Positions 3,354 through 64,000 of a stretch of 64,000 nt of DNA are shown piece by piece (the first letter of the stretch is position 1; every line of letters begins with the position of its first letter). Origin of the DNA: Epithemia pelagica (Eukaryota; Protista; Bacillariophyta). The stretch is taken from contig OX337236.1 of NCBI GenBank assembly GCA_946965045.2, forward strand, positions 1,302,001-1,366,000, in the 5' to 3' direction. The notes beneath the pieces were generated by a model, which worked only from the letters and a program-made list of their open reading frames with translations, ran no database searches and was not told the DNA's origin. The position numbers and the translations under genes are program-made.

Positions 3354-3675
3354 GTAGCTATTGTAGTGAGGTGTATGCAGGGTGGACCGCCACCACCCAC
3401 ACAGAATACGAGAAAATATAATAACTAGTTGTCAAAGACTATCTGCCATTTGATTATGATTGATCGAAGACAAGGACTCTAATGATGATGCGGACTTGCT
3501 AGAGGAGTAAGGACTCTTTAGGTAGTCTACTTCTTCGGCCAAACCGGACGTCGGCCAGACAGTATGACGTTGTCCGGGACTGCGATGAGACGGGAACCAA
3601 AGGATACACCCAGCCCTCATGTTCAACTCATGTAGCGAAGCACAGTACATTGTCCATCCCATCAACAAATTGACC

Positions 3676-7765: not shown

Positions 7766-8184
7766 CAAATAATTGCGCCCACGCGGAATCACATGCAACG
7801 AAACCAACCAACCAACCAACCGAATCGTGTGACGATGGACGACCAACGACAGTGGTCCTCTCGAATCCGCTCCGTCTTTTACCGATTCACATCCTTTTAC
7901 ATTTATGCTTTCGCCAACCTTTTTTTATAAACTGTGACAAATCATTCTAGTATAGTTCCAACCATGGCAACCGTCTTCTGTCGATAGTTTGAGTATGGTA
8001 TACAAGATGCCAGTCGTATAATCCGTCAGCGATGGGACTTTCCTGTTGCTTTGCCTCTGTAGGATTAGAGGCAGGCAACACTGTCGTTTTAGTAGCAATG
8101 TAAAAAAGATCCAAGAAAAACATGATACTCCAGTCGTCGATACATTATGAATTAAACGTGCGTTATTCAAATGCAGTGTATCGC

Positions 8185-9261
8185 CTAGTAGAATGGCTTG
8201 TAAAATTCCGGATATTCCAGTTTCGATGAGTTCAACATGGGTGGCAAAACGACTTTACCGCCAGAGACGTTTCGATTGGTAAAAAACATGTTTCGCAAGT
8301 TCTCCTGCTTATGAATCCTGCTTGAATTTAGATCAAAGTTCTGTTGATCCATGTATGCTGCAGCTTCGGTCGATCGACATTCGCCTTGGCGCCATTGCAC
8401 ATTAGGTCTGTCTGAGTTGAAACATTCCATGAGGACTGTGTCAAAGCGCGCAATCTTTGAACCAGCACTCCGGATGACCATCAAATCTGCGCCCTCGGCA
8501 TCTACCTTCAAGTTGATGGACTTGATTCGTTGCGGAATCAAATCGATCAAACTTTCCAAGCGAATGACATTGGTCTTGATGGATCTTCGTGATTTGGCGC
8601 AACCGAACGTGTTGTTCTTGGCAGTCGGCAACAACGAACTGCACACGGCCACATTTGCCACGTAAAAATCAGCAATTCCTTCACTTTCTCCCACCGCCGT
8701 TCTGAGATAAAACGCTTGGTGCATATACCTCGGGTCGAGCCACTGTTTGGAGTTGTTCTTGGAGTTGGTCATGGCATATTTCGACACTCTTTGAGCCAGT
8801 GGAATAATGCTGTCTGGGAGAGGATCCACGACAATCACAGCTGTTGTTGGGAGATACTTGTCAAATTCCTTCGTCTTTCTCTTCTTTGGTGGAAGTGCCT
8901 TACCCTGTTGCTTGAGGGATGCGGATAAGTCCTCCAATGCATCAAGGTAGTCGGAATTTCGCGCCCCTACATCAATGACGACAGAGTCAATATGTGGAGG
9001 AAAGTCAATGGTTCCATTCTGGTCAATGGGAAAGAAAGCTGGTCCAAGATGCTTCATCATGTTTGTACCCGCATTTTGGTTCTCACTGGAACTAGACAGT
9101 TCGGGAATGTGCTCCTCCACAAGGGCCTCGCGATGCATGGGCGACACGACTGAGAGTTGAATCATGGCACCACCATACACCAAGGCAACCGTAGAACAGA
9201 CGCATATTACAGTGAATGCAGATGGCCTCTTTCCGGATGAAACCGAGGCTTTGTTCTCCAT
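8185..9261 (-). CDS. FkbM-family SAM-dependent methyltransferase with N-terminal membrane anchor
   Basis: VVIDVGA (motif I), IVVDPL, AVGE and LKVDAEGAD are typical FkbM motifs. Single TM segment near the N-terminus. Confidence 0.82.
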   Translation of the reverse strand: MENKASVSSGKRPSAFTVICVCSTVALVYGGAMIQLSVVSPMHREALVEEHIPELSSSSENQNAGTNMMKHLGPAFFPIDQNGTIDFPPHIDSVVIDVGARNSDYLDALEDLSASLKQQGKALPPKKRKTKEFDKYLPTTAVIVVDPLPDSIIPLAQRVSKYAMTNSKNNSKQWLDPRYMHQAFYLRTAVGESEGIADFYVANVAVCSSLLPTAKNNTFGCAKSRRSIKTNVIRLESLIDLIPQRIKSINLKVDAEGADLMVIRSAGSKIARFDTVLMECFNSDRPNVQWRQGECRSTEAAAYMDQQNFDLNSSRIHKQENLRNMFFTNRNVSGGKVVLPPMLNSSKLEYPEFYKPFY

Positions 9262-9865
9262 TATGGAATCTCTTGTTTAAGGTCTCGTAGTTGAACGCTT
9301 GTTGAAGATCTCGCAGTTGGACGCATTGAGATAGGTCCACCTTGTGTTTTGTTGGAGTACCATTTCCTTGTCTGGTTTTACCCATCCCCATTCTTGTGGT
9401 GGTCTATCGTCGATCTTGTTCTCGTTCTCGTTCCAACGGACTGTTTTGAGAAGATTTTGTTGTGATTCGCTATGTGTCGTCTTTTTTCTATGTACAGGTA
9501 GCTCTTGGGCCAGCGGAGGCGCGCGAGCGGGAGGTCCTGAATCCCGCATTGATACTTTGAAACACGACCACGACCACCCAGGGCAAACCCAAAGTTAACC
9601 GTCGTTTCGAGAGTTTCTCGACAACACGCCTCAACCTCAACTCGCAACTCTGTGCTCTGTGTACCATATCATCTTATTGCTGCCGTTCAATTCTTGTCCT
9701 CATCATTCCATACCTATAATACACTTCATCACCAATCAAGAGGTCTAGAGTCTAGAGTGCTTTTCTTTGAGATTCAGAAGACATAAAAACGGCAGGTGCT
9801 AACTTTCTCATCCTTTTTATGGAAGAATCAGCAACACAGTAAGAAACCAAGAGGAAGACTTGACA

Positions 9866-11593
9866 ATGAGAGAGTCGCTGCACCAGCCGGAAGAAGAACA
9901 TGCTGGTCATGAAGATCCTCTGGCACAGGGAAGTGTGGCGACATCCTTTCATCAACAGATTGAAATGATCACAACGCCATTTCGAAGATTGTCGCCGACG
10001 CCTGTATCCGACGCGTCGAATAGCCATTCGGCTGGAACCGCGTCCTTGTTGGCGCACGACGGCATGATGAACGGCAATGGCCGTGTTGTACAAGCTATAA
10101 CCAATAACACATTAGGAAGTGGACCAGATGAAGAAATGAACCCTCTTGTATTGGAATCTCCGTCCTCTTTTGCTTCGGACACCAGCGAATCCAAACACGA
10201 CGATGGTCATGGAGGTGGTGCTCCAGGGAGTGCCTCCAATCCACAAGTGGTGATCAACATTATTATTAGTTTTGTGGGAGCTGGATTATTGGGAGTACCG
10301 AATGCCTTTTCCAAGGCTGGATGGTTGCTCGGGTCGGTCACCTGTATTGTTATTTCAGCCTTGAATTTATATGCCATGTTGCTCTTGCCTCAAGTCAAGC
10401 GCAAACTACTGTCGAGATCAATAGCCACCACTGCGGAGGTAAACAGCAATGGCCAGCAACCACAACAACCGCCACAATCTCTGCATTCTCCCAAAGATAT
10501 AGTTTCCTATGGAGATTTGGGAAGAGTCATTTTGGGACCAACAGGAGAAGTTTTGGTCAATATTTGTTTGGGAATCAGTCAAGCGGGCTTTGCCACGGCT
10601 TATATTATTTTTATTGCGGCCAATTTATACAGTGTTGCCCGCATCCCACGATTGTTGGTTTGTATCTTGAGTGTACCCGGTCTCTCCTTTTTGGTTTCCT
10701 TGAATGAAATGAAGCAGCTTGCACCCTTTAGCCTGCTGGCCAATGCGGCCAACTTTTCGGCGCTCCTGGCTGTGTTGGTTCAAGATTTTGGAGAGTTGCG
10801 TCAACAACGCAAACAACGAAGTCTTAGTCCAAGTTACCAATTCCAAGATCCAGCAGCCAACATTTCAACTGGGGTGGATGACGATTTGTCAAATTTCACA
10901 CCCGAAAGTAACACTCAACCGCCCACGATCCATGCCGTTCGATGGGGCGGATTCCTTTACGCAATTGCCATTACCATTTACAGCATGGAAGGAATTGGCC
11001 TGATTCTGAGCTTGGAAGCTTCAGCAAAACAACCACACATGTTTTTACCCCTCTTGAAAGGAACGGTTGGCTGTATTACAATGTTCATGGCCTTCTTTGG
11101 ATCTGTTGGTTACATGGCCTTTGGGGATGATACAATGGCACCAATCACACTCAATTTAACTGGTGCAGTGGTAGGGACCTTTGTCAAGTGTGCATTGTCC
11201 TTAGGGCTCTACTTGACCTACCCCATTATGATGTTTCCCATTTGGAGTATTGCTGAGCGGATCAGTCCTAAAATCAAGGACAATGCCAAATTGAGCAAAC
11301 GATTCCGTATTGGTGTGGTTTGTGTGTCGGCGTTGGTGGCCTATGCTGTTCCTGATTTTGGCAAGTTTTTGAGTTTGGTTGGAAGCTCCATCTGTACTAT
11401 TCTTGGATTCATCTTGCCCTGTTACTTTCATTGGGTTGTGTTTGATAAAGAGCTACCCAAATGGCAATACAATTTGAACGTGTTCTTGATTTTTGGCGGA
11501 AGCTTGTTTGGAATCATTGGTACGGCTGAAAGTTTTATTGCCATGCTCAAGGGAGACCTGGAATCGGAAGTGCGGAGATTAGAAGAACTGTAG
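9866..11593 (+). CDS. Amino acid/auxin permease family transporter (Aa_trans, AVT/PAT-like)
   Basis: NIIISFVGAGLLGVPNAFSKAGW, SYGDLG, YSMEGIGLILSLE, FGSVGYMAFG, LTYPIMMFP; about 11 hydrophobic segments. Confidence 0.92.
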   Translation: MRESLHQPEEEHAGHEDPLAQGSVATSFHQQIEMITTPFRRLSPTPVSDASNSHSAGTASLLAHDGMMNGNGRVVQAITNNTLGSGPDEEMNPLVLESPSSFASDTSESKHDDGHGGGAPGSASNPQVVINIIISFVGAGLLGVPNAFSKAGWLLGSVTCIVISALNLYAMLLLPQVKRKLLSRSIATTAEVNSNGQQPQQPPQSLHSPKDIVSYGDLGRVILGPTGEVLVNICLGISQAGFATAYIIFIAANLYSVARIPRLLVCILSVPGLSFLVSLNEMKQLAPFSLLANAANFSALLAVLVQDFGELRQQRKQRSLSPSYQFQDPAANISTGVDDDLSNFTPESNTQPPTIHAVRWGGFLYAIAITIYSMEGIGLILSLEASAKQPHMFLPLLKGTVGCITMFMAFFGSVGYMAFGDDTMAPITLNLTGAVVGTFVKCALSLGLYLTYPIMMFPIWSIAERISPKIKDNAKLSKRFRIGVVCVSALVAYAVPDFGKFLSLVGSSICTILGFILPCYFHWVVFDKELPKWQYNLNVFLIFGGSLFGIIGTAESFIAMLKGDLESEVRRLEEL

Positions 11594-11993
11594 CGCCATG
11601 AGAGAGAGTTAATGGTGGTTGACGTGGCAATCATGATAGTTTGACTCCTTTGAGATTTGGGTTCATCACAGCAAATATACCACTTCTGGTATGTTCGCTA
11701 TAACGGATGGAACGATAACGTCTACGTTGGTGGTGCACTGAATCCATCGCGTCGGTATGTTTGTTTGCGAGAGACGTCAAATTGAGTTCATGCCCAGCTT
11801 AATTCCTTGTAGCTCGTGTTGTCGCGGAAACATTCAGACTTGAACAGCTAGCAACATTTTTAATGCTCATTCTAAAAGTGAGATTGTTGTCACAAACGTG
11901 TCATGTTCCTACGCACCCTATGATCACGAGGTTAACTAAATCGATGTTATTTGTCTTACGGTGTAGTCATTAGAGCCAAAACGGTCGCTTTCA

Positions 11994-13745
11994 TCACTTG
12001 AACAGATGAACAAACGTATGTATAAATGTATGTATCGTTCTCCCCAGCCAAGCCAGGACACGCGCCGCAGGTCCACCACAGGACTCCAAGAGTCCCCAGG
12101 AATTTGACAATGCCATACTAAGAGCCGCACGATGCAAGAGGTATCCGTGGGATGGATAACTGTGGATGGAGCGCGCGACATCTCGTACCGTCAAACCGTT
12201 GGTAATGGCCATTCCCATGCTATTGGCCATTTCCGCTGCGGCCGGGCCGCAACAGGTGAGCCCTAGTATTCGTCCACTGATTTTGGCCGCTCTCAGTTCG
12301 AGAAAGGAAAACGAAGTGTTGCGGGCTGTACGGTCCATGTCGGCTCGATCGGATCCATCTTCGCGCACCAAGACTGCATCAAAGCCATCGAGGCCAAACT
12401 TTTCCTCACATTCCCATTCGGTAAGTCCAACACAGGCAAGCTCAGGGTCTGTGTAAATGACTCGAGGGACGCAAGGATGCACCGAAGGATATCGTTTCCC
12501 ACCCACACGAAGAATCCAAGGCACAACTGCATTGCGAATAGCATGGAATCCTGTCCACGCAGCTTGCGATGCTGTGCGTAAGCGAGGAGGAACTGCACTG
12601 GAACAATCTCCCACTGCAAAAATGTGACCTTGTGTTGTAGACTGAAGCGTTCGTGGATGCACTGTGACACCTTGCTCCGGTGTCCATACAACGCCAGCAC
12701 GGTCCAATCGAAGTGATTCCAGAGACTCTCGGGGAGACCTTCCAACACAAATCAAAAGACCATCTACATTGGACAACAACCGAGTTTTCCCGCGTAGACG
12801 CAAGGTCTGGTTCGGAAGAATTTGGACCAGCCGACTTTGTATGCATTCAATGCCGTCAGCCTCCAAAATTCTTCGTGCTGATTCACGAAGTGACTTATCC
12901 TCCAGAGGGAGAACAGCAGGCGCAATCAGCTTCACTTTGAACAATGACTTGCCAAGCCTTGCTAGCGTCTGTCCTAACTCACACGCAGTTGCTCCGGCAC
13001 CAACAATAGCCAGAGTTTTTCGTCTGCGCATGACGCTGCTTGTGGTGGCATTGAAGATGGACCAAAATTCTCGATTCAGCTCGGGTCTCAAAACACTCTG
13101 GTAGGTGAATAAAGGAATACCAGCGACCCTTGCCTGTTCTGTCCATGCAGAAGGTAAAATGGGACCTGCACCAGTGGAAATTAGAAAGGTTTTGCCATGA
13201 ATGGACTCGACAGTGCGATTGGCGTGTACTACTTCGATTTCATGGGGATTCACAAAGCGACAGGACTGGACGTTGTTCCGAACAAGGATTTTCTTGTTCC
13301 GTTCTTCTATGGCTTTTGGATTTTCTCTTTCGCGAACTGCTTGGACCGTATCCACCAGGTAGTTTCGTGATGTTTCATCCCAGCCAAGTTGTTGAATGGC
13401 CGCCGATCGTAAGGCTTTGCTCGGTACACAAGCAGCGTTGGTGCAGTCCCCACCAAGATTCGGTCGGCTATCAATCAAGGCAACACGTTTTCCCAGCAAC
13501 GTAGCGGCTCCACCGGCAAACAAACCTGCGGCTCCTGCTCCGATGATTACAACGTCGGTGTGCAAAGATGGCAAATGAAGTGATGGTGGGAGCTTTCGGT
13601 TCTGGTTGGTCGGAGATGATTGCAGAAAAGTCTCGCCTCCCAAGCTACCACCCCCAGGTATGGCCAGCCCTGACGAATGACTTCTAATAACAGACAGAAA
13701 GAGCACCACACGTATCCATAGCTGCTCTTGGCGGTATCGCACCAT
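11994..13745 (-). CDS. Class I pyridine nucleotide-disulfide oxidoreductase (MerA/LpdA-like) with N-terminal signal peptide
   Basis: DVVIIGAGAAG (FAD), GGDCTNAACVPSKAL (redox CxxxxC), IVGAGATACELG (NAD(P)), AVGDC, PRVIYTDPELACVG, HSYPS. Confidence 0.88.
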   Translation of the reverse strand: MVRYRQEQLWIRVVLFLSVIRSHSSGLAIPGGGSLGGETFLQSSPTNQNRKLPPSLHLPSLHTDVVIIGAGAAGLFAGGAATLLGKRVALIDSRPNLGGDCTNAACVPSKALRSAAIQQLGWDETSRNYLVDTVQAVRERENPKAIEERNKKILVRNNVQSCRFVNPHEIEVVHANRTVESIHGKTFLISTGAGPILPSAWTEQARVAGIPLFTYQSVLRPELNREFWSIFNATTSSVMRRRKTLAIVGAGATACELGQTLARLGKSLFKVKLIAPAVLPLEDKSLRESARRILEADGIECIQSRLVQILPNQTLRLRGKTRLLSNVDGLLICVGRSPRESLESLRLDRAGVVWTPEQGVTVHPRTLQSTTQGHIFAVGDCSSAVPPRLRTASQAAWTGFHAIRNAVVPWILRVGGKRYPSVHPCVPRVIYTDPELACVGLTEWECEEKFGLDGFDAVLVREDGSDRADMDRTARNTSFSFLELRAAKISGRILGLTCCGPAAAEMANSMGMAITNGLTVRDVARSIHSYPSHGYLLHRAALSMALSNSWGLLESCGGPAARVLAWLGRTIHTFIHTFVHLFK

Positions 13746-49496: not shown

Positions 49497-49556
49497 TGAG
49501 AGATAGCACAACTATGTTTGGCTAGGTGTTAGTGACATAGCTGCTACTCTCACTAG

Positions 49557-50183
49557 TGCCGCGCCGGGTGAGGCGGCCAAAACCTCGAAAATAGCGGCCA
49601 AATGACCATGATGGACATCTAGCGTAACTCACTCAATATAGGACGCCCATGCCCCAATATCGAGCGACGTCTTCTTCAAACAATGCTCTCGGCCCCTGCG
49701 GGCCACTTTTGCTATAGCGGCCATGGTTATCGAGTTCTAACTCACCATTGTAGGGTCATTTTTTTTTGTCCACGTAATGGCCGCTAGATTGCCCTTTGGC
49801 CGCTACATTGATGGTACTATAAGTCGACCACTACGTGCCCTACCATCAAATGGTGCCTACGATGTGTCTATCGTAGTGTAAGGAAGAGCACTTTCAGGTC
49901 ATATGGGCTATCGGTGGGCGTGATAGCGCAAACAAACCCCTGCTCGATTTGGCTCGTTTTTGTTGGAACGAGATTTTCATCCGTAACTCGATGTACTGCC
50001 GAAGCTCCAATATGGTAGTTCTACAGTTCATACTTGAAGGGCTTTTACTTTAGGGTCTACCTTCGTGAAACCAACTATCATAACTATCGTAGGTGCCATG
50101 GTTATCGCAAAATAGTCGTCCATCGATGAGAATTTTCATCTCTCGCGACACGAACCACAATCGATCCTCATCGTCAGTTTCCG
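49557..50183 (+). repeat. Left long terminal inverted repeat (unique part)
   Basis: Reverse complement of about 63247-63875, with a few substitutions and small indels. Confidence 0.95.
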
Positions 50184-52030
50184 CTACTCGTCTCGTTCAA
50201 TCTTGATTCTCTGCCCCTCCTACTTTGTAGCATTTTAGTTTAGGACCTACTTGAGCGTAACGAGGTATCAGATTGACCGTAGGCGCCATGGTCATTGAGA
50301 ATGGGCCATCCATTGATGGAGGCATTTTTCTCGATGTAGCACGTAGCACACAACATTTCGAGACCGAAGGACGTTGCTAATCGTCTCGTTCAATATTGAC
50401 TCGCTTGCCTTCCTACTTTGTAGCATTTTAGTTTAGAACCTACTTGAGCGTAACGAGGTATCAGATTGACCGTAGGCGCCATGGTCATTGAGAAGGTGCC
50501 ATCCATTGATGGAGGCAATTTTCTCGATGTAGCACGTAGCACACAACATTTCGAGACCGAAGGACGTTGCTACTCGTCTCGTTCAATATTGACTCGCTTG
50601 CCTTCCTACTTTGTAGCATTTTAGTTTAGGACATACTTGAGCGTAACGAGGTATCAGATTGACCGTAGGTGCCATGGTCATTGAGAATGGGCCATCCATT
50701 GATGGAGGCATTTTTCTCGATGTAGCACGTAGCACACAACATTTCGAGACCGAAGGACGTTGCTAATCGTCTCGTTCAAAATTGACTCGCTTGCCCTCCT
50801 ACTTTGTAGCATTTTAGTTTAGGACATACTTGAGCGTACCCAAGTCTCAGATTGACCGTAGGCGCCATGGTTATTGAGAAGGTGCCATCCATTGATGGAG
50901 GCATTTTTCCCGATGTAGCACGTAGCACACAACATTTCGAGACCGAAGGACGTTGCTAATCGTCTCGTTTAATATTGACTCGCTTGCCTTCCTACTTTGT
51001 AGCTTTTTAGTTTAGAATTTACTTGAGCGTACCCAAGTCTCAGATTGACCGTAGGCGCCATGGTTATTGAGAATGGGCCATCCATTGATGGAGGCATTTT
51101 TCCCGATGTAGCACGTAGCACACAACATTTCGAGACCGAAGGACGTTGCTACTCGTCTCGTTCCATATTGACTCTCTGCCCCTCCTACTTTGTCGCGTTT
51201 TAGTTTAGAACCTACTTGAGCGTAACGAGGTATCAGATTGACCGTAGGCGCCATGGTCATTGAGAAGGTGCCATCCATTGATGGAGGCATTTTTCTCGAT
51301 GTAGCACGTCGCACACAACATTTCGAGACCGAAGGACGTTACTACTCGTCTCGTTCAATATTGACTCGCTTGCCTTCCTACTTTGTAGCATTTTAGTTTA
51401 GAACCTACTTGAGCGTAACGAGGTATCAGATTGACCGTAGGCGCCATGGTCATTGAGAAGGTGCCATCCATTGATGGAGGCATTTTTCCCGATGTAGCAC
51501 GTAGCACACAACATTTCGAGACCGAAGGACGTTGCTAATCGTCTCGTTCAAAATTGACTCGCTGCCCCTCCTGCTTTGTAGCATTTTAGTTTAGAACCTA
51601 CTTGAGCGTAACGAGGTATCAGATTGACCGTAGGCGCCATGGTCATTGAGAATGGGCCATCCATTGATGGAGGCATTTTTCCCGATGTAGCACGTAGCAC
51701 ACAACATTTCGAGACCGAAGGACGTTGCTACTCGTCTCGTTCCATATTGACTCTCTGCCCCTCCTACTTTGTAGCATTTTAGTTTAGAACCTACTTGATC
51801 GTAACGAGGTATCAGATTGACCGTAGGCGCCATGGTCATTGAGAAGGTGCCATCCATTGATGGAGGCATTTTTTTCTCGATGTAGCACGTTGCACACAAC
51901 ATTTCGAGACCGAAGGACGTTGCGATTTGCTCCTTCAATTTGGACTCGCTGCCCCTCCTACTTTGTAGCATTTTAGTTTAGGACATACTTGAGCGTACCC
52001 AGGTCTCAGATTGACCGTAGGTGCCATGGT
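50184..52030 (-). repeat. Left subterminal tandem array, 193-bp unit, about 9.6 copies
   Basis: Marker CATTTCGAGACCGAAGG recurs at 50354, 50547, 50740 ... 51900 (period 193; last interval 195). Confidence 0.95.
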
Positions 52031-52195
52031 GTTTATTATCCTAGTAGCGACCATCAACGGAAGTGGTGTTTCCATTTGGTAGTTTGCCCTTTGAATCCGT
52101 AAGTTTCTATGACTTCTGTATGACTTCTGAGTGATGATTCAAGGAAGTTGAAGAATAGTCAATGCTATTTTGATTTATATCTAGTTCAACGTTGT

Positions 52196-52717
52196 TTAGG
52201 ACTGCATGTAGTTGTCGTAAAGATTCTCGCAGTCATCTTGTTGGGTCTCGGCAAAGTCGAAAGAAAGATCGCTATCAACAGCAGTTCCACGGGAGGATAC
52301 AGTCTGAGCACTACGCATCGAGATGCTGCTCATGATTGAGAAACGTGATGCAGGCTTTTCGATCTCCTCGTTGACTGGGCTAAGGTCGTCGGCAAACTTG
52401 ATTTTCAGGTGGCGTACTGGAGTCTTGTCTCCACCATTCAATCCTTCTTCCTCTAAATTGTCGCGAATCTTGGTGATTGATTCTTGAACGGTTCCAAGAA
52501 CAACTACGGTTTTGTCCCCACATTCTTGATCCAATCCTTCCGAGAGCAATTCTGCCTTTCCAATGGTTGCTGTCTCTGCCTTGATTTTTGTTTTCTTGAG
52601 GGCACCTTGTTCAGTTGGGCGCACGGCAGATTTTGACACACTGGTTCGAACAACACTTGTGTGTGTGCGGTTTTGAAGGCGCGCACTAACACGGCGCTTG
52701 TCGATATAGAGTGACAT
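52196..52717 (-). CDS. Unknown ORF inside the piggyBac-like element
   Basis: 173-codon ATG-initiated ORF, S/T/K/E-rich; no family recognised. Confidence 0.4.
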   Translation of the reverse strand: MSLYIDKRRVSARLQNRTHTSVVRTSVSKSAVRPTEQGALKKTKIKAETATIGKAELLSEGLDQECGDKTVVVLGTVQESITKIRDNLEEEGLNGGDKTPVRHLKIKFADDLSPVNEEIEKPASRFSIMSSISMRSAQTVSSRGTAVDSDLSFDFAETQQDDCENLYDNYMQS

Positions 52718-53195
52718 TGTGTTGTTGCTTTTGTTGTTGTAGTTGCAGTTGTTCTTGATGTGTTTCTCGTTGACGCCGTTTTATGAAGGTCGCTGTCGGC
52801 TCTGTCTCTCGTTGATGTTTGATTGATGTGACGTCTCACCATAAAATCGGATCTCGTATGGGAAGCCGGCTTGCGGCTCAACGCTCAACGGAAGAAAATT
52901 TTCTTAAGTAACTTGTCACACTTTCGTAATTGCTCCCGAGTGGCAATAGTAGGAAGTCCCCAACCGTTCCCCCAAATCAAATGAAGTTTACTACATGTCG
53001 TCTGAGAAATCGATTTTACGACGTAAGAGCTTTTCCGAAGGAGAGGAGAGAATCGATAGGCCACCTGAATGAAGTGCTCACCTGAGGAAAGAGCTTTTGT
53101 TTGCAAATCAAAACGAGCGTAGAAGTAAGTGGTTCCGCGGCATCTTAATCATTGCTTACAATGGTGGCAATAACCTCGACTCATTGATTCTCTCT

Positions 53196-53756
53196 ATGCT
53201 TAGGACGGATCGAAGTACAATGTCCGAACACGAGAATGAATCGCGCAATCGGATTCTCCTTCCTAACGGCTTTCACCTCGTACAAGATACGGGGAGCAAC
53301 ATCGAGCTCCAAGGAAGCCGCTTAACCATCTACGGTGAAGCGGGTGTGAACGTACACCTTCAAGACGCCACTCTCGGGGAGAAAGGAGAAAAGGGGACAC
53401 TTGTTGTGGATCGAGGCGTGATTCTTTTACAGCGCTCCAGGTATGGTACCAACGGTGGAATGCTATCAATTTGCGCGTTTGGCCGTGACAAGAAGGACGA
53501 TTCGATGCCTGACATCGTCATCCCAGTCGGATCGGTTCACAACAAAATTCGCTCCAAGAAGTTCCGTTCCAAAAATGGGTCCCTTGTCAAAGGAGAACTC
53601 ACCATTGAGACCTCTCACTCCTTGGATACCAAGGTGACAATGGGACCCATGATCATTACTGTGCGAATGAGTCTTACTGGGATGAATGCATTCATGTCGC
53701 TCTATGACAAAGCAACGGAGACGTGGCCCAACCAGGAAAGTGTTAAAATCACGTAA
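53196..53756 (+). CDS. Unknown beta-rich ORF inside the piggyBac-like element
   Basis: Part of ORF 53097..53756, with first ATGs near 53196 and 53220. Alternating hydrophobic pattern ending in a likely helix; no confident family. Confidence 0.5.
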   Translation: MLRTDRSTMSEHENESRNRILLPNGFHLVQDTGSNIELQGSRLTIYGEAGVNVHLQDATLGEKGEKGTLVVDRGVILLQRSRYGTNGGMLSICAFGRDKKDDSMPDIVIPVGSVHNKIRSKKFRSKNGSLVKGELTIETSHSLDTKVTMGPMIITVRMSLTGMNAFMSLYDKATETWPNQESVKIT

Positions 53757-53871
53757 GCGGGTAACAAATGATAGTTAGTATTCTTATTCATGGTGGTTTC
53801 CTAATTTCATAATATGTAGAGAGGCGCAAACATGTAGAATGAGTGTAGTTCTTGTGCACACAGAAGTTTCA

Positions 53872-56800
53872 TTAAGTCGCATTTCCTCCTTTCGCCGCAG
53901 CAAAGTTCATGGCGTGCTGCTCGATACAAGTTCGTTGTTTCCCATATCGAATGCCCACAGATGGCTTGCACACTGGTGTTCCCACGTAGGTTATCGAGCG
54001 CCAAGTCTTGGTGAACATGCGGCATTGTGGATGGCCACACATGGCTCGCGTGTCATTCTTACAAATAACACATTTACGCTTCATGCCTCTTTGGTCTGAT
54101 GAAGAAACGTTGTCCTGTTCAACAACGCTGTGACAAACGACCGAATCAATTGTAAGCTCAGAAAATACGGACGCGGGTGATATACTGCTTGAACAGGTAT
54201 GGCCAACACTTGATGGCACAGTTACGGAGGCATCCGTACACACCGAAAGGTTGTTTGTCACTGGCAAGCTTTCAAGCACACCCGCTCTTCGTTCAACTGA
54301 ACTGCGTTCGGAATATGGATTGTTGATTAAGTCATAAGCCAGCATATCCGCAAAGTCGTGGATTGAGGTATTCAGGAAAGGTTCCACTTGCATGTGAAAA
54401 CGCAGTGCAAGATAACAATCAACCACCGTCATACCGAAGACTGTCGTCACAATCCGAAACCACCGATTTTTAGTTAACCATAGTTCTTCGAGGCGTAGAA
54501 GACCCTGACGGATGTGATTGTGCCGGTCAATTGCATTGGCGTGCCGAAAGTATTTTGAAATACAGTCGGGACGCTCGACTCTCCGCTGCTTGATATTTCC
54601 AAACACATCTGTGAAGCGAGCAATGTATGGTGCGCCCGGTTGAGTATGCCCGGCATCTTTGGTCATGACAAAGAGAAGAACCTTCCTTGTATTGTACTTG
54701 TACCCAACCGCTACGAGCTTCACTCCAGTGACAGGGGCAGTACACTCCATGACAAGGTAGGCTCCGGATGGAAAAGACTTCATCTGCTTCTCGATCTGTT
54801 TCTTGGGAAACCATGAGTGCGCTGTCTTCACAGCACCAATGAACTCATGTCCATCCGTGTTCAGCCCTTTCTCTTTGTCCACGTAGAACGGAAAGGAAGT
54901 GCGATTGCGTCGATCGTCCTGTTCCCTCCACGAACACTTGAGGCATTCAGCGACCTGGACACTTCCAAACCAGGAGTCGCCTAAATACAGGTAGCGCTTG
55001 GAGGCCTTTCCAGCTTCGTGGCGTGCGCTTGACAGCTGTCCACTGTATTGTGAACCTTCGACAAGCCGCAGTGTGCAGCCGCCCGATGGACCAGACTTCG
55101 CGACAAACTTCTTACGCCGCATTGGGACTCTTCCTTCTTGGATTTCAAGATGGGTCAGACACCCTGTCGTGGTGTCGGCGACCACCTGTGAATGAAATAA
55201 GGTAGTAAGGTCAGACACATTAAGTCTTCAAAACATTGTCTGTCTGGTGTTAGCTTACCTTGAACTCCGTCCCAAGAGGTTTGGGCTTGCGGGCAATAAA
55301 TGAGATATGCGGCAACAAAGATTGCTTGGTCGTTCGTGGTCGAAACGCACTCATCGACTCGTCAAGCACTTGAACCACGGACGACGCAATTATTTGTCGG
55401 CGGTTCTCATTGAACCTATCAATCAGGGGACGGATTTCATTCCATTTGTCATTCGGATCCGTCCCCCTGAAGGCATGATAGAGATGCGTCTTAATGTCGT
55501 TGAACCTACTCTCTGCCATGATGTTTTCGCCTTTCGTTCCAAAATTTACATGTGGTGATAACCGACGAGTGCTAGGATCCTGGAAAAGAGCCTTTCCTCC
55601 TACACCAAGGGGACTTGCCGCGACGATAATCCCCCAAACTTTCCACCACTCGCCTTCCGTAACCATTCGAATTTTCTTCTTTGTATCACGCTTTTGATTC
55701 AATCGATCTAAACTAAGATTAAGGACTCTCAACTGATTTTGCCAGTTCCCTGTACAGAGGCCGATTGCAAGAAAGTGAGACTGTTGAACTTCTGCGATGT
55801 AGAAACAAAGAGTAGTGCTGACTTACCTGGCCAGAAGTGCATCAACAAGTCAAGAAATGGAAAGGAGTATTTTTCATTCTCGTGGCTTATTTCACTTTTA
55901 CTCATCCTTTTGCCGAAGTTGTAGCCAACGATTGCATTCTTCTCATAGTCCGACACTTGATGATCCGGCGATGAATCCTCGACTATCTTCCACTCAAATC
56001 TTCTTTTGTCCTCTTTCCTTCGTAGCTGTTGACCCGTTAAATCGGTCGTTGGCTCACTCTCTCCGTCAAAAAGCACAGTCCATAGGTTTCCTTTTGCCAC
56101 TGGATTCTTCTTCCCGTCGACAACTGTTCCCCATTGAGCATTGTTGCCATTCTTGTGAACTCGATCTCCAATGTCGATTCCTTTTTTCTTGGGAGGCTTG
56201 ACGACTACGGTCCAGTTGCTTTCAATAAGATGGTCTTTGGTAAGCTTGTATTGCTCCATTTTATGCCTGTGACGATCTTCGTCTCTTTCAACCAAAGCCC
56301 CGAAAGCCAATTGGCGTGCTTGTGCTTGTTCTTGTTCAGCTCCGTCATCCTCGTCATCATAGACAAGTTCCACGGGTACATCTTCTTCGAGTTCTTCATC
56401 GGCAGCTGCATCTTCATCCTGATCTTCATGTTCGTTGTCACTATCTTCATCATCATTTTGCCTGGTCGTTGGTGGGTTGTTCTGATTGTTCGGAGGTGCA
56501 TCTTGACCTTGAGCGTTGTCCAGGATCGCCGCTTGTGCCAAAACTTCAATTTCTTCATCGTCGCTTACATCTGTTAATATCACTCCACCAACAGTGCGAG
56601 GAGCCTCTGAAGTCGTTGTCGTTGCTGCGGTCGTTGCAGTGGTCGTTGCAGTGGTCGTTGCCGTGGTCGTTGGTGCAGCAGTCGTTGTCATTACCGATTG
56701 CATTGGTGTGGTTGTTCCTGCTGTCGATGCCGCTGCCGTCGGCCTTGCTGTCGTCTCGACTGGGGTGTTCGTTGTCGTTGTCGCGCTCGTTGTCGCGCTC

Positions 56801-57207
56801 GTTGTCGCGCTCGTTGTCGCGCTCGTTGTCGTTGTCGTGGTTGCCGTTGGCATTGACGTGGATGTTGCTGTCCTCGATGCCGTTGTCATTGTCCTTGCTA
56901 CGGTTTCGGCTGGAACTGGAGTATTTGATACTGTGGTTGTTGTTGAGATCGTAGGTCGAGGTCCGGTTGCTGCAACTGGATCTGGTTGTCCAGGAAAACC
57001 TTCATCTTGCTTGGGGAATCGAAGCTGTGGGGAAGAGCGTTCATTTCTTAGCTCTGTTAGATTTCCTCTTTCGTCCACTCCAGCGACCATCCACTTATGA
57101 AATTCGACTGCTTCAACAATAATGCATGGGATGTCTCCACGCCTCATGAAACATCTCGATCCAATCCCCAAACCACATGATTTAGGCCTCGGCGGCAGTG
57201 GTTCCAT
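53872..57207 (-). CDS. piggyBac-like (DDE_Tnp_1_7/PGBD-type) transposase, 3 exons, 1061 aa, apparently intact
   Basis: Exons 57207-55827, 55749-55259 and 55185-53872 sum to 3186 nt. GT-AG introns 55826-55750 and 55258-55186 give joins FWP-GNWQNQL and GTEFK|VVADTTTG. Catalytic triad VLDES / LGDSWF / AIDRHN, plus RKPKPLG and a C-terminal Cys-rich CVIC..C...C tail. Confidence 0.9.
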
Positions 57208-57645
57208 TGCTGTATCGTTCTCGTGCGTTTTGGTCTTCTCAAGTTTCTAAGAGGTTATTGAGAATTGCTGTTTGTGTGTCCAATCTCCATTAGCGGTCAA
57301 AAGCAACTTTTCGACTTGCAAGCAAGCACATGGTTGATTGTTGAATGAACTGTGGAACGATGTTGGAGGGAAGATGTAGTTTTTGTGGAGCAGTCGCTAC
57401 AAAAGCGCGTGTTCCGCATGCCCGCCCGCCTTAATTAAACGACAAGAATGTTCTAAACATAATGAAATATGTAACAAAATTTAACGTTTTAACCGTATTC
57501 CCGTTGAATCGAAAGATTTTTTCCAAGTGTGGTCTGATTTGTTTTTTTGTCAAGTGGTCTGCAGACCAGGCAATGACGAACGCTCTCTGTCTGAGAAACG
57601 CTTGAAAACCCAAGACTCTCTGAGAAACCCCTACTCTACAAAAAG

Positions 57646-60426
57646 ATGGAGAGGAGAACAATGAAAACACGAAGTCAATCTGAATCGCGTCTCAAGGCGC
57701 TTGCTCATGTTGCAGTTGCTGCCTCGGAGGCGGAGTCGGAGCCACATTCACCATCACCTATGGCAGCAGCAGACGAAGCAACAATGGCAGCAACAGAAGA
57801 AGCGAGAGCAAGCCATCGGTTTCTTACAGACGAAGACCTCCATAAAGTCAACGAGAAAAAGCATGCAGACAGTCGTCGCGGCAAGCTAAAGGACGACAAT
57901 GCATACACGGACTCGGCGTCGGCTTTGAAACAGCGCCTCAGCGAGCAACGGAAAAAGGATTATGCGGAGGCTGTCGCTGCAGTAAAGAAAGTCAAGGCCC
58001 ATGGACGGGATCCATGGGACAATTTCATCCGAGGACTGAAGTTTCTGTCCACTTCGATCAAGGATGGCACTGTGCTGATCAACGCATACGGAGTGTTTGT
58101 GGCAAAGAAGATTGGCGTCACATTTTCGGTGACAGATGCGCCCATTCGCAAATCAGGCACAGGCATCAAGAACTCTAATACGGCCCCCAAGAAAAATGAC
58201 TACGGACTGGAAGTTGGGGAAGTTGTGCCCAAGTCCGTTGGGATTGGGATCCCAACCAAGCAAACTCGAAACAACTCGTGCCTCAAGTTTCGACAGTTCA
58301 GCTTCTCCCTCAAGAATGATCCGATCTTCAAGATTATGCTGGGGACAAAACACATCTTCACAGTCAAGAAGTCGGGCCTCAAGGCTGAAGAGGGAAAAGA
58401 AGGCCCCGGGTTTGGTCTTTTTTCTGTACAAGAGCACAAAGTAGGTGAGGTGATTGGTGTGTATGCAGGGTTGGATATCACCTCTCGGACCGTCGGTCGG
58501 ACCGAGTACGCAATTCAGTTTGGAGAGCACGGAGAACGCATCGTTCAAGCCGACAACGAGGATTTCTTTTTCATGGGGTTTCATTTGATGAATGATCCCC
58601 AGTATCACCTCTACGATACAGAAGAAGGACCTGACGAAGCACACCAGGACTACAACGTGCGTATCGACAAGAATCTGCTAGTTCGTGTGATCAAGGACAT
58701 CGCGGAGGGGGACGAGCTGTTTTTATTCTACAACCTTAGCTCGGACACCAAGACGATCGCAGCCTCAAAGGAAGGCGGTGAGGAGCCTGATGAGGATGTG
58801 CAGAAGAAGCGAGGTCGATCCAGCCAGGATGATTCTCCGAAGAAGGTGAAGAAGATGAAGATGGGTGGTTCTGGTGGTAATGCTCCTGCTCCTGATGTTG
58901 CCATTCAACAGCACTACCAACCGCACGACCTTCAACTGCACCATCCTGTTCCCGCCGCTGCTGCTCCTGATGTTGCCATTCAACAGCACTACCAACCGCA
59001 CGACCTTCAACTGCACCATCCTGTTCCCGCTGCTGCTGTTCCTCATGATGTTGCCACTCAACAGCACTACCAACCGCACGACCTTCAACTGCACCATCCT
59101 GTTCCCGCCGCTGCTGCTCCTGATGTTGCCATTCAACAGCACTACCAACCGCACGACCTTCAACTGCACCATCCTGTTCCCGTCGCTGCTGTTCCTCATG
59201 ATGTTGCCACTCAACAGCACCACTACAATTCTCCGCAAATACACCACCTTCAACCACACCATCATCCTCAGTACCACAGTCCACCATACCATCATCCTCC
59301 ACATTCCCACTACACGCCCGGGCATTTCTATGATGAGCATCATCGGCCCCATGTCTTGGTGGCTCAGGGGCAGCTCCCTTATGAAGGATACGGGCAGGTT
59401 CAGCCACAACCAAGCATTCCATATGACGCCCCGATACTCAATGAAAACCCCAGTCCGGAGGACTCTCACCAGGTGGAAGCGGTTGAGGAGGAACCAAATC
59501 CGGCAGAGAAAGCAAAAGAACTGAATAAAAACTATGGCCACTTGTTGATCAATTATGAGGGTGATCCACGAGGACGTTTTTTGGTCGCTCCGACAGAGCT
59601 TCTTGGATTGTTGCGTGATGTCTGGTCTCTCGGAACGGAGAAGCATGGGGACGACAAGATTTCGAAGAGAATGCGGGGTGTGCAACAATACACCCCACAA
59701 ATCCAAATGCGCATGTTTGACGGTGAAGGATTAGTGGCACATGACGAATTCACACCCTGGGGGAAGAAGCGGGTAGCTGAAATTGTGGCAACATTCAAGA
59801 AGACTCTTGCTCAAGCCCTTGTGGACATGGAGTACGCAGAGGATGACTCCTTTGCTGAAGGTATCCAGATCCACCTGTCGCTCCTCAAGACCACATTTGA
59901 AAAGGTGCAAGAGCCACATCTGGATTTCAAATGGGATGTGGTCACGCCAAGTCCGGACGAGGAACAGGGTTCGACTGAACAGAAAGGGACACCCCAAGGC
60001 AACGTCAAGACTCGTGGAAAGGGACGAAAAAAAGCGCCGTTCCGAGAACGTGTCCCATTTGCTGTTTTTGTGCCCCTGACGGAGGACGGAATGACTTTAG
60101 AATTGTGGCGGCACCGCAAGGACCACAAGAAGAATAGGCATCAGTTGGGTGAGGTGGTCGACGTTCCCTATGGAACGTTCCTCATGATGCAAGGCAATAC
60201 TGTTCACGCCGGAGGCTTCTTGACCAGTGCCCAAGGCAATCCACGTGCCCATTTCTACATGTATCAAGGGCGTGATCAAACCATTCATCCATATCTTCCC
60301 AAAAACGAGTACCAGTTACCACCCTACTACAACTCAGAAGATCGTCTCGCAACATATTACCGGCACAGTCAGCATGTCCACTATAAATCTCCAAAGAAAG
60401 TTCGTGGCGCACTTCTTCTAAAATAA
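57646..60426 (+). CDS. Cargo protein: SET domain + His/Gln-rich repeat + 2OG-Fe(II) dioxygenase-like domain
   Basis: SET at about 58351-58734: TVKKSG..GPGFGLF..GEVIGVYAG..YAI..FHLMNDP..YNV..VRVIKDIAEGDELFLFYN. Dioxygenase-like: QEPHLDF (H 59917, D 59923), AVFVPL, VDVPYGTFLMMQGNTVHAGG (H 60205), GNPRAHFY (R 60244). Confidence 0.8.
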   Translation: MERRTMKTRSQSESRLKALAHVAVAASEAESEPHSPSPMAAADEATMAATEEARASHRFLTDEDLHKVNEKKHADSRRGKLKDDNAYTDSASALKQRLSEQRKKDYAEAVAAVKKVKAHGRDPWDNFIRGLKFLSTSIKDGTVLINAYGVFVAKKIGVTFSVTDAPIRKSGTGIKNSNTAPKKNDYGLEVGEVVPKSVGIGIPTKQTRNNSCLKFRQFSFSLKNDPIFKIMLGTKHIFTVKKSGLKAEEGKEGPGFGLFSVQEHKVGEVIGVYAGLDITSRTVGRTEYAIQFGEHGERIVQADNEDFFFMGFHLMNDPQYHLYDTEEGPDEAHQDYNVRIDKNLLVRVIKDIAEGDELFLFYNLSSDTKTIAASKEGGEEPDEDVQKKRGRSSQDDSPKKVKKMKMGGSGGNAPAPDVAIQQHYQPHDLQLHHPVPAAAAPDVAIQQHYQPHDLQLHHPVPAAAVPHDVATQQHYQPHDLQLHHPVPAAAAPDVAIQQHYQPHDLQLHHPVPVAAVPHDVATQQHHYNSPQIHHLQPHHHPQYHSPPYHHPPHSHYTPGHFYDEHHRPHVLVAQGQLPYEGYGQVQPQPSIPYDAPILNENPSPEDSHQVEAVEEEPNPAEKAKELNKNYGHLLINYEGDPRGRFLVAPTELLGLLRDVWSLGTEKHGDDKISKRMRGVQQYTPQIQMRMFDGEGLVAHDEFTPWGKKRVAEIVATFKKTLAQALVDMEYAEDDSFAEGIQIHLSLLKTTFEKVQEPHLDFKWDVVTPSPDEEQGSTEQKGTPQGNVKTRGKGRKKAPFRERVPFAVFVPLTEDGMTLELWRHRKDHKKNRHQLGEVVDVPYGTFLMMQGNTVHAGGFLTSAQGNPRAHFYMYQGRDQTIHPYLPKNEYQLPPYYNSEDRLATYYRHSQHVHYKSPKKVRGALLLK
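58885..59225 (+). repeat. Coding minisatellite (75/78-bp units, about 4.4 copies) in the SET gene
   Basis: PDVAIQQHYQPHDLQLHHPVPAAAA-type unit, arranged as a 153-bp dimer repeated twice. Confidence 0.92.
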
Positions 60427-60582
60427 AAAACTATAAGTTTATGCTTGCGTGATAGACTTTCGTCTGTTGTTGTAATCCATGACCTCCCCAATTCCATTTC
60501 TCGTCTCAATCGTCCCCTGTCTCCGACATCTTCAGACAACACTTAAAAATTGATTTGAAGCTTGCCCAATCTCGTGTGCTTT

Positions 60583-63246
60583 GTGCTACATCGGGAAAAA
60601 TGCCTCCATCAATGGATGGCCCATTCTCAATGACCATGGCGCCTACGGTCAATCTGAGACCTGGGTACACTCAGGTAGGTCCTAACCTAAAAAGCTACAA
60701 AGTAGGAAGGTAAGCGAGTCAATATGGAACGAGACGAGTAGCAACGTCCTTCGGTCTCGAAATGTTGTGTGCTACGTGCTACATCGAGAAAAATGCCTCC
60801 ATCAATGGATGGCACCTTCTCAATAACCATGGCGCCTACGGTCAATCTGAGACCTGGGTACGCTCAGGTAGGTCCTAACCTAAAATGCTACTAAGTAGGA
60901 GGGGCAGCGAGTCAATATTGAACGAGACGAGTAGCAACGTCCTTCGGTCTCGAAATGTTGTGTGCTACGTGCTACATCGAGAAAAATGCCTCCATCAATG
61001 GATGGCCCATTCTCAATGACCATGGCGCCTACGGTCATTCTGACACTTGGGTACGCTCAAGTAGGTTCTAAACTAAAATGCTACAAAGTAGGAAGGCAAG
61101 CGAGTCAATATTAAACGAGACGAGTAGCAACGTCCTTCGGTCTCGAAATGTTGTGTGCTACGTGCTACATCGGGAAAAATGCCTCCATCAATGGATGGCA
61201 CCTTCTCAATAACCATGGCGCCTACGGTCAATCTGAGACTTGGGTACGCTCAAGTAGATTCTAAACTAAAATGCGACAAAGTAGGAGGGGCAGAGAGTCA
61301 ATATGGAACGAGACAAGTAGCAACGTCCTTCGGTCTCGAAATGTTGTGTGCTACGTGCTACATCGAGAAAAATGCCTCTATCAATGGATGGCACCTTCTC
61401 AATGACCATGGCGCCTACGGTCAATCTGATACCTCGTTACGCTCAAGTAGGTTCTAAACTAAAAAGCTACAAAGTAGGAAGGTAAGCGAGTCAATATTGA
61501 ACGAGACGAGTAGCAACGTCCTTCGGTCTCGAAATGTTGTGTGCTACGTGCTACATCGAGAAAAATGCCTCCATCAATGGATGGCCCATTCTCAATGACC
61601 ATGGCGCCTACGGTCAATCTGAGACTTGGGTACGCTCAACTAGGTTCTAAACTAAAATGCTACAAAGTAGGAAGGCAAGCGAGTCAATATTAAACGAGAC
61701 GAGTAGCAACGTCCTTCGGTCTCGAAATGTTGTGTGCTATGTGCTACATCGGGAAAAATGCCTCCATCAATGGATGGCACCTTCTCAATAACCATGGCGC
61801 CTACGGTCAATCTGAGACTTGGGTACGCTCAAGTAGATGCTAAACTAAAATGCGACAAAGTAGGAGGGGCAGAGAGTCAATATGGAACGAGACAAGTAGC
61901 AACGTCCTTCGGTCTCGAAATGTTGTGTGCTACGTGCTACATCGAGAAAAATGCCTCTATCAATGGATGGCACCTTCTCAATGACCATGGCGCCTACGGT
62001 CAATCTGATACCTCGTTACGCTCAAGTAGGTTCTAAACTAAAATGCTACAAAGCAGGAAGGTAAGCGAGTCAATATTGAACGAGACGAGTAGCAACGTCC
62101 TTCGGTCTCGAAATGTTGTGTGCTACGTGCTACATCGAGAAAAATGCCTCCATCAATGGATGGCCCATTCTCAATGACCATGGCGCCTACGGTCAATCTG
62201 AGACTTGGGTACGCTCAACTAGGTTCTAAACTAAAATGCTACAAAGTAGGAAGGCAAGCGAGTCAATATTAAACGAGACGAGTAGCAACGTCCTTCGGTC
62301 TCGAAATGTTGTGTGCTACGTGCTACATCGGGAAAAATGCCTCCATCAATGGATGGCACCTTCTCAATGACCATGGCGCCTACGGTCAATCTGAGACTTG
62401 GGTACGCTCAAGTAGGTTCTAAACTAAAATGCTACAAAGTAGGAAGGCAAGCGAGTCAATATTAAACGAGACGAGTAGCAACGTCCTTCGGTCTCGAAAT
62501 GTTGTGTGCTACGTACTACATCGAGAAAAATGCCTCCATCAATGGATGGCACCTTCTCAATGACCATGGCGCCTACGGTCAATCTGATACCTCGTTACGC
62601 TCAAGTAGGTTCTAAACTAAAATGCTACAAAGCAGGAGGGGCAGCGAGTCAATTTTGAACGAGACGATTAGCAACGTCCTTCGGTCTCGAAATGTTGTGT
62701 GCTACGTGCTACATCGAGAAAAATGCTTCCATCAATGGATGGCCCATTCTCAATGACCATGGCGCCTACGGTCAATCTGAGACTTGGGTACGCTCAAGTA
62801 GGTTCTAAACTAAAATGCGACAAAGTAGGAGGGGCAGAGAGTCAATATGGAACGAGACGAGTAGCAACGTCCTTCGGTCTCGAAATGTTGTGTGCTACGT
62901 GCTACATCGAGAAAAATGCCTCCATCAATGGATGGCACCTTCTCAATGACCATGGCGCCTACGGTCAATCTGATACCTCGTTACGCTCAAGTAGGTTCTA
63001 AACTAAAATGCTACAAAGTAGGAAGGCAAGCGAGTCAATATTGAACGAGACGAGTAGCAACGTCCTTCGGTCTCGAAATGTTGTGTGCTACGTGCTACAT
63101 CGAGAAAAATGCCTCCATCAATGGATGGCCCATTCTCAATGACCATGGCGCCTACGGTCAATCTGAGACTTGGGTACGCTCAAGTAGGTTCTAAACTAAA
63201 ATGCTACAAAGTAGGAGGGGCAGAGAATCAAGATTGAACGAGAGTA
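60583..63246 (+). repeat. Right subterminal tandem array, 193-bp unit, about 13.8 copies, inverted relative to the left array
   Basis: Marker CCTTCGGTCTCGAAATG recurs every 193 bp from 60748 to 63064 (13 copies) plus partial units. Confidence 0.95.
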
Positions 63247-63875
63247 GCGGAAACTGACGATGAGGATCGATTGTGGTTCGTGTCGCGAGAGATGAAAATC
63301 CTCATCGATGGACGACTATTTTGCGATAACCGTGGCACCTACGATAGTTATGATAGTTGGTTTCACGAAGGTAGACCCTAAAGTAAAAGCCCTTCAAGTA
63401 TGAACTGTAGAACTACCATATTGGAGCTTCGGCAGTACATCGAGTTACGGATGAAAATCTCGTTCCAACAAAAACGAGCCAAATCGAGCAGGGGTTTGTT
63501 TGCGCTATCACGCCCACCGATAGCCCATATGACCTGAAAGTGCTCTTCCTTACACTACAATAGACACATCGTAGGCACCATTTGATGGTAGGGCACGTAG
63601 TGGTCGACTTATAGTACCATCAATGTAGCGGCCAAAGGGCAATCTAGCGGCCATTACGTGGACAAAAAAAAAATGACCCTACAATGGTGAGTTAGAACTC
63701 GATAACCATGGCCGCTATAGCAAAAGTGGCCCGCAGGGGCCGAGAGCATTGTTTGAAGAAGACGTCGCTCGATATTGGGGCATGGGCGTCCTATATTGAG
63801 TGAGTTACGCTAGATGTCCATCATGGTCATTTGGCCGCTATTTTCGAGGTTTTGGCCGCCTCACCCGGCGCGGCA
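63247..63875 (-). repeat. Right long terminal inverted repeat (unique part)
   Basis: Reverse complement of 49557-50183. Confidence 0.95.
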
Positions 63876-64000
63876 CTAGAGAACGTGGGGAGATGTTTCG
63901 TGGGTTGGTTCGTTGGGCGTGATTCTGACGTGGAACAGCGTGGTGAAATGGTTTTTATTTAATGGATTGATAAAACAATGGATGACCGTTCTTCGATCAT

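Follow-up and report, generated by a model that had tools for sequence, protein, structure and literature searches.

We analyzed a 64,000-nucleotide stretch of the Epithemia pelagica genome (GenBank assembly GCA_946965045.2, contig OX337236.1, positions 1,302,001 to 1,366,000 of the forward strand; hereafter the window) and found a piggyBac-like DNA transposon that carries, beside its transposase gene, a gene for one protein with both a SET/PR-like methyltransferase domain and an Fe(II)/2-oxoglutarate (2OG) dioxygenase domain. This gene (window 57646-60426, plus strand) is an uninterrupted open reading frame (ORF) of 926 amino acids, with its stop codon within the coordinates. The dioxygenase was identified at the level of the fold and the SET domain at the level of sequence profiles. 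The fusion of the two is real: it recurs in two diverged paralogous loci (45-55% identity) and each half shows constraint at the protein level, and the gene lies inside a recently mobile element. We consider it fairly probable that the product is a two-enzyme, piggyBac-like transposon cargo that acts in the nucleus to the benefit of the element, with lysine methylation as the presumed task of its SET half and hydroxylation of a protein side chain as that of its oxygenase half.

The C-terminal domain was examined by an exhaustive phmmer search with residues 620-926 against 1.84 billion representatives, which returned 219 relatives at E ≤ 1e-3, of which 57 also pass E ≤ 1e-10. Pfam gave no match to this domain in the window protein and no dioxygenase match in any of 34 homologues (E ≤ 0.01), indicating a dioxygenase family without a Pfam model. 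The invariant columns in the alignment of the 34 homologues include Q755, H758, D760, H854, G856, and H869, while R867, R849, and D851 are each conserved in at least 90% of the sequences. The family signature can be written as QxPHxDF ... RGDxVHAGG-x9-GNPRxH. An earlier reading of the window, made from its sequence only, had pointed to an HxD...H spacing with a downstream Arg (H59917, D59923, H60205, and R60244). These nucleotides correspond to H758, D760, H854, and R867, located within QEPHLDF, TVHAGG, and NPRAHFYMY, and the conservation of these residues, together with that of H869, shows that the motifs did not arise by chance.

The AlphaFold2 (AF2) model of the dioxygenase domain was confident (pLDDT 87.9, pTM 0.87). 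Foldseek comparison of the model with the PDB yielded 401 matches at E ≤ 1e-3, and the top 50 were all Fe(II)/2OG oxygenases, including AndA, SnoN/SnoK, FtmOx1, KanJ, OkaE, AusE, P4H, and DAOCS. The Swiss-Prot AlphaFold models, ESM Atlas, BFVD, and AFDB clusters concurred on a 2OG oxygenase. The double-stranded β-helix (DSBH) 2OG fold that the sequence-only reading had proposed for the C-terminal third, with a structure search set beforehand as its test, was thus confirmed. H854 and R867 are situated on the last two core strands of the model, as expected for a DSBH enzyme. R867, which is 13 residues past H854 and at the start of model strand 248-254, is predicted to hold the C5 carboxylate of 2OG. 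Furthermore, the family profile matched FtmOx1 among the PDB sequences at a borderline E of 0.06. VHAGG...GNPR pairs with VVHAGG...GKPR in this alignment, R867 pairs with the Arg of GKPR, and H854 aligns with FtmOx1 residue 205 (counted from the printed alignment), which we take to be the distal iron ligand of FtmOx1. Residues 160-172 of the model form a basic insert that was poorly modelled.

The TM-scores of the model to PDB entries were between 0.35 and 0.48, indicating that this dioxygenase is a diverged branch. Its fold, as modelled, does not tell the substrate. PhyH-like small-molecule enzymes and protein prolyl hydroxylases are about equally close. The PhyH Pfam family (PF05721) found no match at E ≤ 1 in the window protein or at E ≤ 0.01 in the 34 homologues, and the PhyH likeness is structural and language-model-based only. 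A JmjC identity was rejected, since Pfam gave no match and neither PDB list has such an entry among its top 50, and TET/JBP and AlkB identities were rejected on the same two grounds. A giant-virus 'DNA repair protein' appeared at rank 10 in BFVD, which is a similarity at the superfamily level only.

Pfam SET (PF00856) matched residues 255-363 of the window protein from end to end (E 6e-4), with a best E-value of 4.4e-7 among the members of the family alignment (A2). A word-indexed search with the full protein left the SET region without matches and returned, for the C-terminal region, only the second copy of the protein (P0001). The SET piece searched alone retrieved five paralogues, and a single-sequence search against the PDB gave nothing useful. 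When a profile of five family members (A3) was run against the PDB sequences at E ≤ 1, 27 of the 28 matches were SET/PR methyltransferases. The top matches were EZH2 (8.3e-5), MECOM (PRDM3; 1.2e-4), and MLL1 (1.2e-3), those to EZH2 and MLL1 spanning profile positions 37-147, with PRDM16, PRDM12, PRDM5, PRDM2, and SETD8 among the others. The language-model atlas features of the SET region likewise matched SET/PR clusters at 0.96, with 171 features shared.

The SET motifs named in the sequence-only reading were all located, as GFGLF (residues 255-259, nt 58408-58422), IGVYAG (270-275), HLMNDP (313-318), and GDELFLFY (355-362). They contain the GxG S-adenosylmethionine (SAM)-binding motif and the YxG motif, and the I-G-x-Y-x-G columns are invariant in the SET family. 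GDELFLFY corresponds to the ELxF/YxY box and ends, as is canonical, in the catalytic Tyr (Y362); this residue is lost in the paralogue P0155. An insert of 12 residues follows the ND box and is missing from P0155. C212 is the sole Cys in the whole protein, which therefore lacks both pre- and post-SET Cys clusters, in agreement with the same reading. Judged from these profiles and motifs, a SET fold is very likely, and we infer a SAM pocket in this half of the protein.

The transposon setting was evident from a second insertion. The window segment 49553-63879 recurs at ~98% identity, with unrelated flanks, at positions 740-12904 of the locus L001 (contig ctg1336l, ENA assembly ERZ21939226). Both copies carry the same perfect terminal inverted repeat, starting TGCCGCGCCGGG, and each has its own 4-bp target duplication, which is CTAG in the window (49553-49556 and 63876-63879) and CTAT in L001 (740-743 and 12901-12904). 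While TTAA is the canonical piggyBac target, these duplications indicate that the element does not target TTAA and is not strictly specific for CTAG. The middle piece of the transposase gene matches DDE_Tnp_1_7 in Pfam (E 2.5e-9). The inverted repeat, the separate duplications, the transposase, and the two insertions bear out the earlier placement of the SET-2OG gene inside a transposon.

The same assembly as that of L001 also holds diverged lineages of the gene (L002-L005). L005 encodes a SET domain, a His/Pro-rich linker of different sequence, and an oxygenase in the same order, at 45% identity, with a frameshift at the oxygenase start. L004 has a SET fragment followed by an oxygenase (51-59% identity), and L002 has the SET gene P0155 (10001-11215) without an oxygenase and no transposase within 10 kb. 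The pairwise ratios of nonsynonymous to synonymous substitution rates (dN/dS) between lineages were 0.25-0.45 for both the SET and oxygenase domains; these ratios are rough, given synonymous divergences (dS) of 0.8-1.8. The iron triad and the Arg are retained in all three SET-linked oxygenase lineages. A maximum-likelihood tree of 40 family members grouped the three SET-linked oxygenase domains in one clade (SH-aLRT 99), located beside a weakly supported group (SH-aLRT 80) with host genes. The single clade and the dN/dS values indicate that the fusion arose once and was kept under protein-level selection over considerable divergence, and the SET-linked dioxygenases thus have a single origin within a stramenopile host family.

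The fusion was confined, in the data searched, to element lineages of the present organism. No SET region was detected among the 150 best oxygenase-family representatives (0/150), and Pfam SET was absent from all 20 long family members (0/20). A scan of JGI metagenomes for SET-family relatives found none, and 14 metagenome loci with the oxygenase family had no SET or transposase nearby.

The coordinates of the element and of the parts of the protein are collected in Table 1. No credible known domain was found in the N-terminal region (residues 38-250; best atlas feature score 0.77). The basic patch behind the SET domain resembles a bipartite nuclear localization signal (NLS) when read against the classical bipartite consensus, and the linker that follows holds a 75-bp (25-aa) tandem repeat of 4.4 copies at 58882-59220, detected by TRF. 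No domain was recognised in the 492-aa N-terminal piece of the transposase (55729-57207, minus strand), which has long low-complexity tracts of Thr/Ala-rich and acidic composition. The three-piece split of the transposase gene recurs in L001, and a similar split exists in the L003 element, whose transposase is 65% identical, suggesting short introns rather than decay. The spacer between the divergent transposase and SET-2OG genes is presumed, from its position, to be a bidirectional promoter. A 193-bp satellite in inverted arrays (50183-52030 and 60568-63243) makes up the inner arms of the element, and the array lengths vary between the window and L001 copies. In L005, the place that the transposase has in the window element, directly upstream of the SET-linker-2OG gene, is taken by an ORF of 1113 aa without a Pfam match (4126-7467), which may encode a transposase that escaped recognition or a further cargo protein.

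Table 1. Features of the piggyBac-like element and its SET-2OG gene (window coordinates).
Feature	Coordinates	Strand	Basis
Whole piggyBac-like element, 14.3 kb	49553..63879		Terminal inverted repeat, target duplication, second copy
piggyBac-like transposase gene, three ORF pieces (492, 160, 448 aa)	53872..57207	-	ORFs; same pieces in L001
438-bp spacer between divergent transposase and SET-2OG genes	57208..57645		ORF coordinates
N-terminal conserved region, residues ~38-214	57757..58287	+	Alignment and tblastn; 50-55% identity in paralogues
Minimal SET/PR-like domain, Pfam envelope residues 255-363	58288..58740	+	Pfam, family profile against PDB, atlas features
Basic patch KKRGR-x10-KKVKKMK, residues 387-405	58804..58860	+	Sequence
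His/Pro/Gln-rich low-complexity linker, ~215 aa	58861..59502	+	TRF, composition
Fe(II)/2OG dioxygenase domain, residues 620-926	59503..60423	+	Homologues, invariant columns, AF2 model, Foldseek and VIA matches

The dioxygenase has host paralogues, which are ordinary diatom genes. P0006, the Epithemia clementina hypothetical protein KAL7564762.1 (L006 10001-11212), is encoded amid ordinary genes and adjoins a PP2C gene. P0014, from a metagenome scaffold (L007 8001-9572), is encoded amid UGGT, MutS, and PP2C genes, and has a TFIIS N-terminal (Med26-type) domain ahead of the oxygenase (E 3e-12). The PP2C neighbor common to these two loci, in two different diatom-like genomes, represents apparent synteny. 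P0009 is an MMETSP transcript, and at least one member of the oxygenase family is therefore transcribed. The best matches among the AFDB clusters were unnamed or automatically annotated as 'Fe2OG dioxygenase domain-containing', followed by C2H2-type domain-containing proteins, which we take to be oomycete proteins from their accession numbers. The partners of the oxygenase (SET, TFIIS-N, and C2H2), together with the NLS-like patch, suggest from context that it works in the nucleus, with chromatin or the transcription machinery as its target, and the transposon cargo protein is probably nuclear.

In order, the parts of the protein are a family-specific N-terminus, a SET/PR-like domain, an NLS-like patch, a disordered linker, and a classical 2OG dioxygenase. 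The proposed site of action is the nucleus, and the target would be chromatin or the transcription machinery, at the element itself or in its vicinity. Methylation of a lysine would fall to the SET half. The oxygenase half would add a hydroxyl group to a protein side chain or, less likely, remove an N-methyl group oxidatively. The element would gain an escape from silencing, or a chromatin state favorable for transposition. Based on the structural neighbors of the model, the oxygenase chemistry is more probably a hydroxylation of the PhyH or prolyl-hydroxylase type than a JmjC-type demethylation.

Alternatively, the oxygenase could be a metabolic enzyme for a small molecule, with a SET fusion that is incidental or directed outside chromatin, for example to a non-histone protein or a metabolite. 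The top structural neighbors AsqJ, OkaE, AndA, AusE, FtmOx1, and KanJ all act on secondary metabolites, and diatom lineage-specific expansions of phage-like dioxygenases have been proposed to serve secondary metabolism (PMC2938197). However, the family associates with nuclear-type partners, namely SET in the present protein, TFIIS-N in P0014, and C2H2 zinc fingers in the oomycete structural relatives. The NLS-like patch and the location of the gene on a transposon, beside the transposase, also argue against a metabolic role. A phage origin of the oxygenase was rejected as well, since tblastn against 50,697 phage records found no homologue. We regard the metabolic alternative as highly improbable.

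Several observations weigh against the proposed two-enzyme cargo. The closest solved structures of the oxygenase are mostly small-molecule enzymes, so that the assignment of a chromatin substrate comes solely from the domain context. The Pfam SET score of the window protein (17.9 bits for the whole protein, 20.6 for the piece) does not reach the gathering threshold of 22.4, although the L005 paralogue (45-50% identical) exceeds it at 27.9 bits. The NH(S/C)xxPN box reads MNDPQ; in all five family members it retains the Asn but has Asp in place of the His. Some active PR/SET enzymes likewise lack the His of the NH box, and its absence does not exclude SET activity. The AF2 model of the N-terminal 363 aa, built on a 7-sequence alignment, failed (pLDDT 31). 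Additionally, the related piggyBac element at L003 contains a SET gene (9623-10804) without an oxygenase.

Other adverse points come from the recent copies, which evolve neutrally. The window ORF and the L001 ORF (L001 8792-11572) differ at 17 sites, with 13 nonsynonymous and 4 synonymous changes. One of them, a CGA>TGA stop at codon 391, cuts the SET domain off from the oxygenase in L001. P0153, P0154, and P0156 are truncated, and P0002 is also among the truncated or frameshifted copies. The window copy itself has Q849 and N851 (nt 60191 and 60196), 5 and 3 residues before H854, where at least 90% of the family has Arg and Asp, and its intact ORF may thus encode a weakened oxygenase. The consensus R849 and D851 are present in L001 and in the contigs of three genomic runs. 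The runs, unlike L001, show no stop at codon 391, and better copies than that in the window probably exist. A search for RNA runs yielded only these three runs matching the sequence, all of which are genomic (contigs up to 509 kb). Contigs from two runs (X1 and X2) also contain a form that skips 700 bases at window 58921-59622, with TGC between, representing a copy that lacks the beginning of the oxygenase domain and the greater part of the His/Pro linker.

The neutral-like differences, the stop codon, the truncated or frameshifted copies, the two altered near-invariant positions, and the lack of RNA among the matching runs would all fit a functionless cargo, in which a captured host-gene fusion decays without effect on the element or the host. 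In contrast, the dN/dS values of both domains, across lineages with a protein-sequence difference of 45-55%, the preserved iron triad and Arg of the three SET-linked lineages, and the architecture retained in L005, including the His/Pro linker, argue for function. Decay of single copies is to be expected even in a transposon family whose master copies are selected. A cargo without function seems unlikely to us.

Four of the 17 differences are C>T changes at CpG in L001 (R77C, R78C, S137L, and the stop at R391). Such changes are the signature of methylated-cytosine deamination, and they suggest that the L001 copy is or was DNA-methylated. A cytosine-methylated element would be consistent with a true writer-eraser protein, in which the oxygenase demethylates methyl-lysine, 5-methylcytosine, or N6-methyladenine to remove a repressive mark while the SET domain writes an activating one. 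Classical 2OG oxygenases, AlkB among them, are chemically capable of hydroxylating N-methyl groups. Precedents exist in the fungal transposons that carry TET/JBP dioxygenases (PMC12730594) and in the JMJD2-SET fusions (PMC2938197). However, the absence of entries named JmjC, AlkB, or TET/JBP from the top 50 of both PDB lists and the lack of a Pfam match count against an eraser, and the family motifs QxPHxDF and RGDxVHAGGx9GNPRxH resemble those of FtmOx1 and PhyH-type enzymes. The sequence-only reading had suggested a possible writer and eraser in one protein; the fusion of a SET domain with an oxygenase held, while the eraser label found no support. We judge the writer-eraser alternative improbable and retain the hydroxylating two-enzyme cargo as our preferred reading.

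A bolder form of this reading, which we consider doubtful, would make the protein a self-carried bifunctional chromatin editor. The SET domain would write a lysine-methyl mark, and the new nuclear 2OG family would hydroxylate or demethylate a histone or transcription factor. Together they would maintain transcription of the element and hold off heterochromatin, or would mark chromatin for integration. If this is true, the oxygenase family would represent a new class of eukaryotic chromatin/transcription hydroxylases, found through a transposon, and its host members would be tied to the Pol II elongation machinery through the TFIIS N-terminal domain.

Few transposons carry enzymes for epigenetic marks, and those that do give a direct view of how mobile elements counter silencing. 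The oxygenase family, with its 219 detected relatives from diatoms and marine samples, has neither a Pfam model nor a studied member. Since it includes conserved host genes, one with a TFIIS-N domain, identifying its substrate might uncover a novel modification of chromatin or transcription in diatoms. Each half of the protein is compact and offers clear catalytic residues for mutation, and the question is therefore directly testable in vitro.

The separate domains have known counterparts. The minimal SET proteins, such as viral vSET and the PRDM PR/SET domains, likewise consist of a short SET core that lacks the flanking pre- and post-SET Cys clusters, and the L005 paralogue has a weak PRDM2_PR match. 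The present SET half differs from them in the family-specific N-terminal region of ~180 aa, the ND in place of NH, and the 12-residue insert after this box. The oxygenase half shares 8-16% identity with the PhyH-like enzymes AsqJ, OkaE, AndA, AusE, PrhA, FtmOx1, and KanJ, at TM-scores of 0.35-0.48. These are free-standing metabolic enzymes, while the present domain is SET-fused and has a basic insert. Prolyl 4-hydroxylases and PHD2/EGLN have no match to it at the sequence level, and no substrate-binding element common to them and the present domain was recognised in the comparisons made.

Literature searches found no report of a transposon ORF with both enzyme types, nor of a transposon-borne classical oxygenase, neither JmjC nor TET, from a family without a Pfam model, nor of a piggyBac-like carrier. 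JMJD2/KDM4-SET fusions have been listed (Iyer et al. 2010, PMC2938197) and similarly join a DSBH oxygenase to a SET domain in one polypeptide. They are JmjC-type host chromatin proteins (HxE, jumonji clade), in contrast to the classical 2OG-Fe(II) dioxygenase on a transposon described here. Fungal DNA transposons, including KDZ, hAT, Harbinger, EnSpm, Helitron, and others, encode TET/JBP dioxygenases (PMC12730594). As in the present element, a 2OG-Fe(II) dioxygenase has been captured and is proposed to counter epigenetic silencing, whereas the oxygenase described here is not of the TET/JBP type, has no Pfam match, is nearest in structure to PhyH-like and prolyl-hydroxylase enzymes, and is fused to SET. 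SET histone methyltransferase genes have been described on the Phytophthora transposons HarbingerS and MuDR (Kojima and Jurka, Repbase Reports 2014, cited in PMC12730594), which are likewise stramenopile DNA transposons with SET cargo beside the transposase. As judged from their descriptions, the present element is set apart by its piggyBac-like carrier and by the fusion of SET to a 2OG dioxygenase in one ORF. The known cases thus carry SET or TET/JBP singly, and what is new here is a single polypeptide that combines SET with a dioxygenase and is encoded by a piggyBac-like element.

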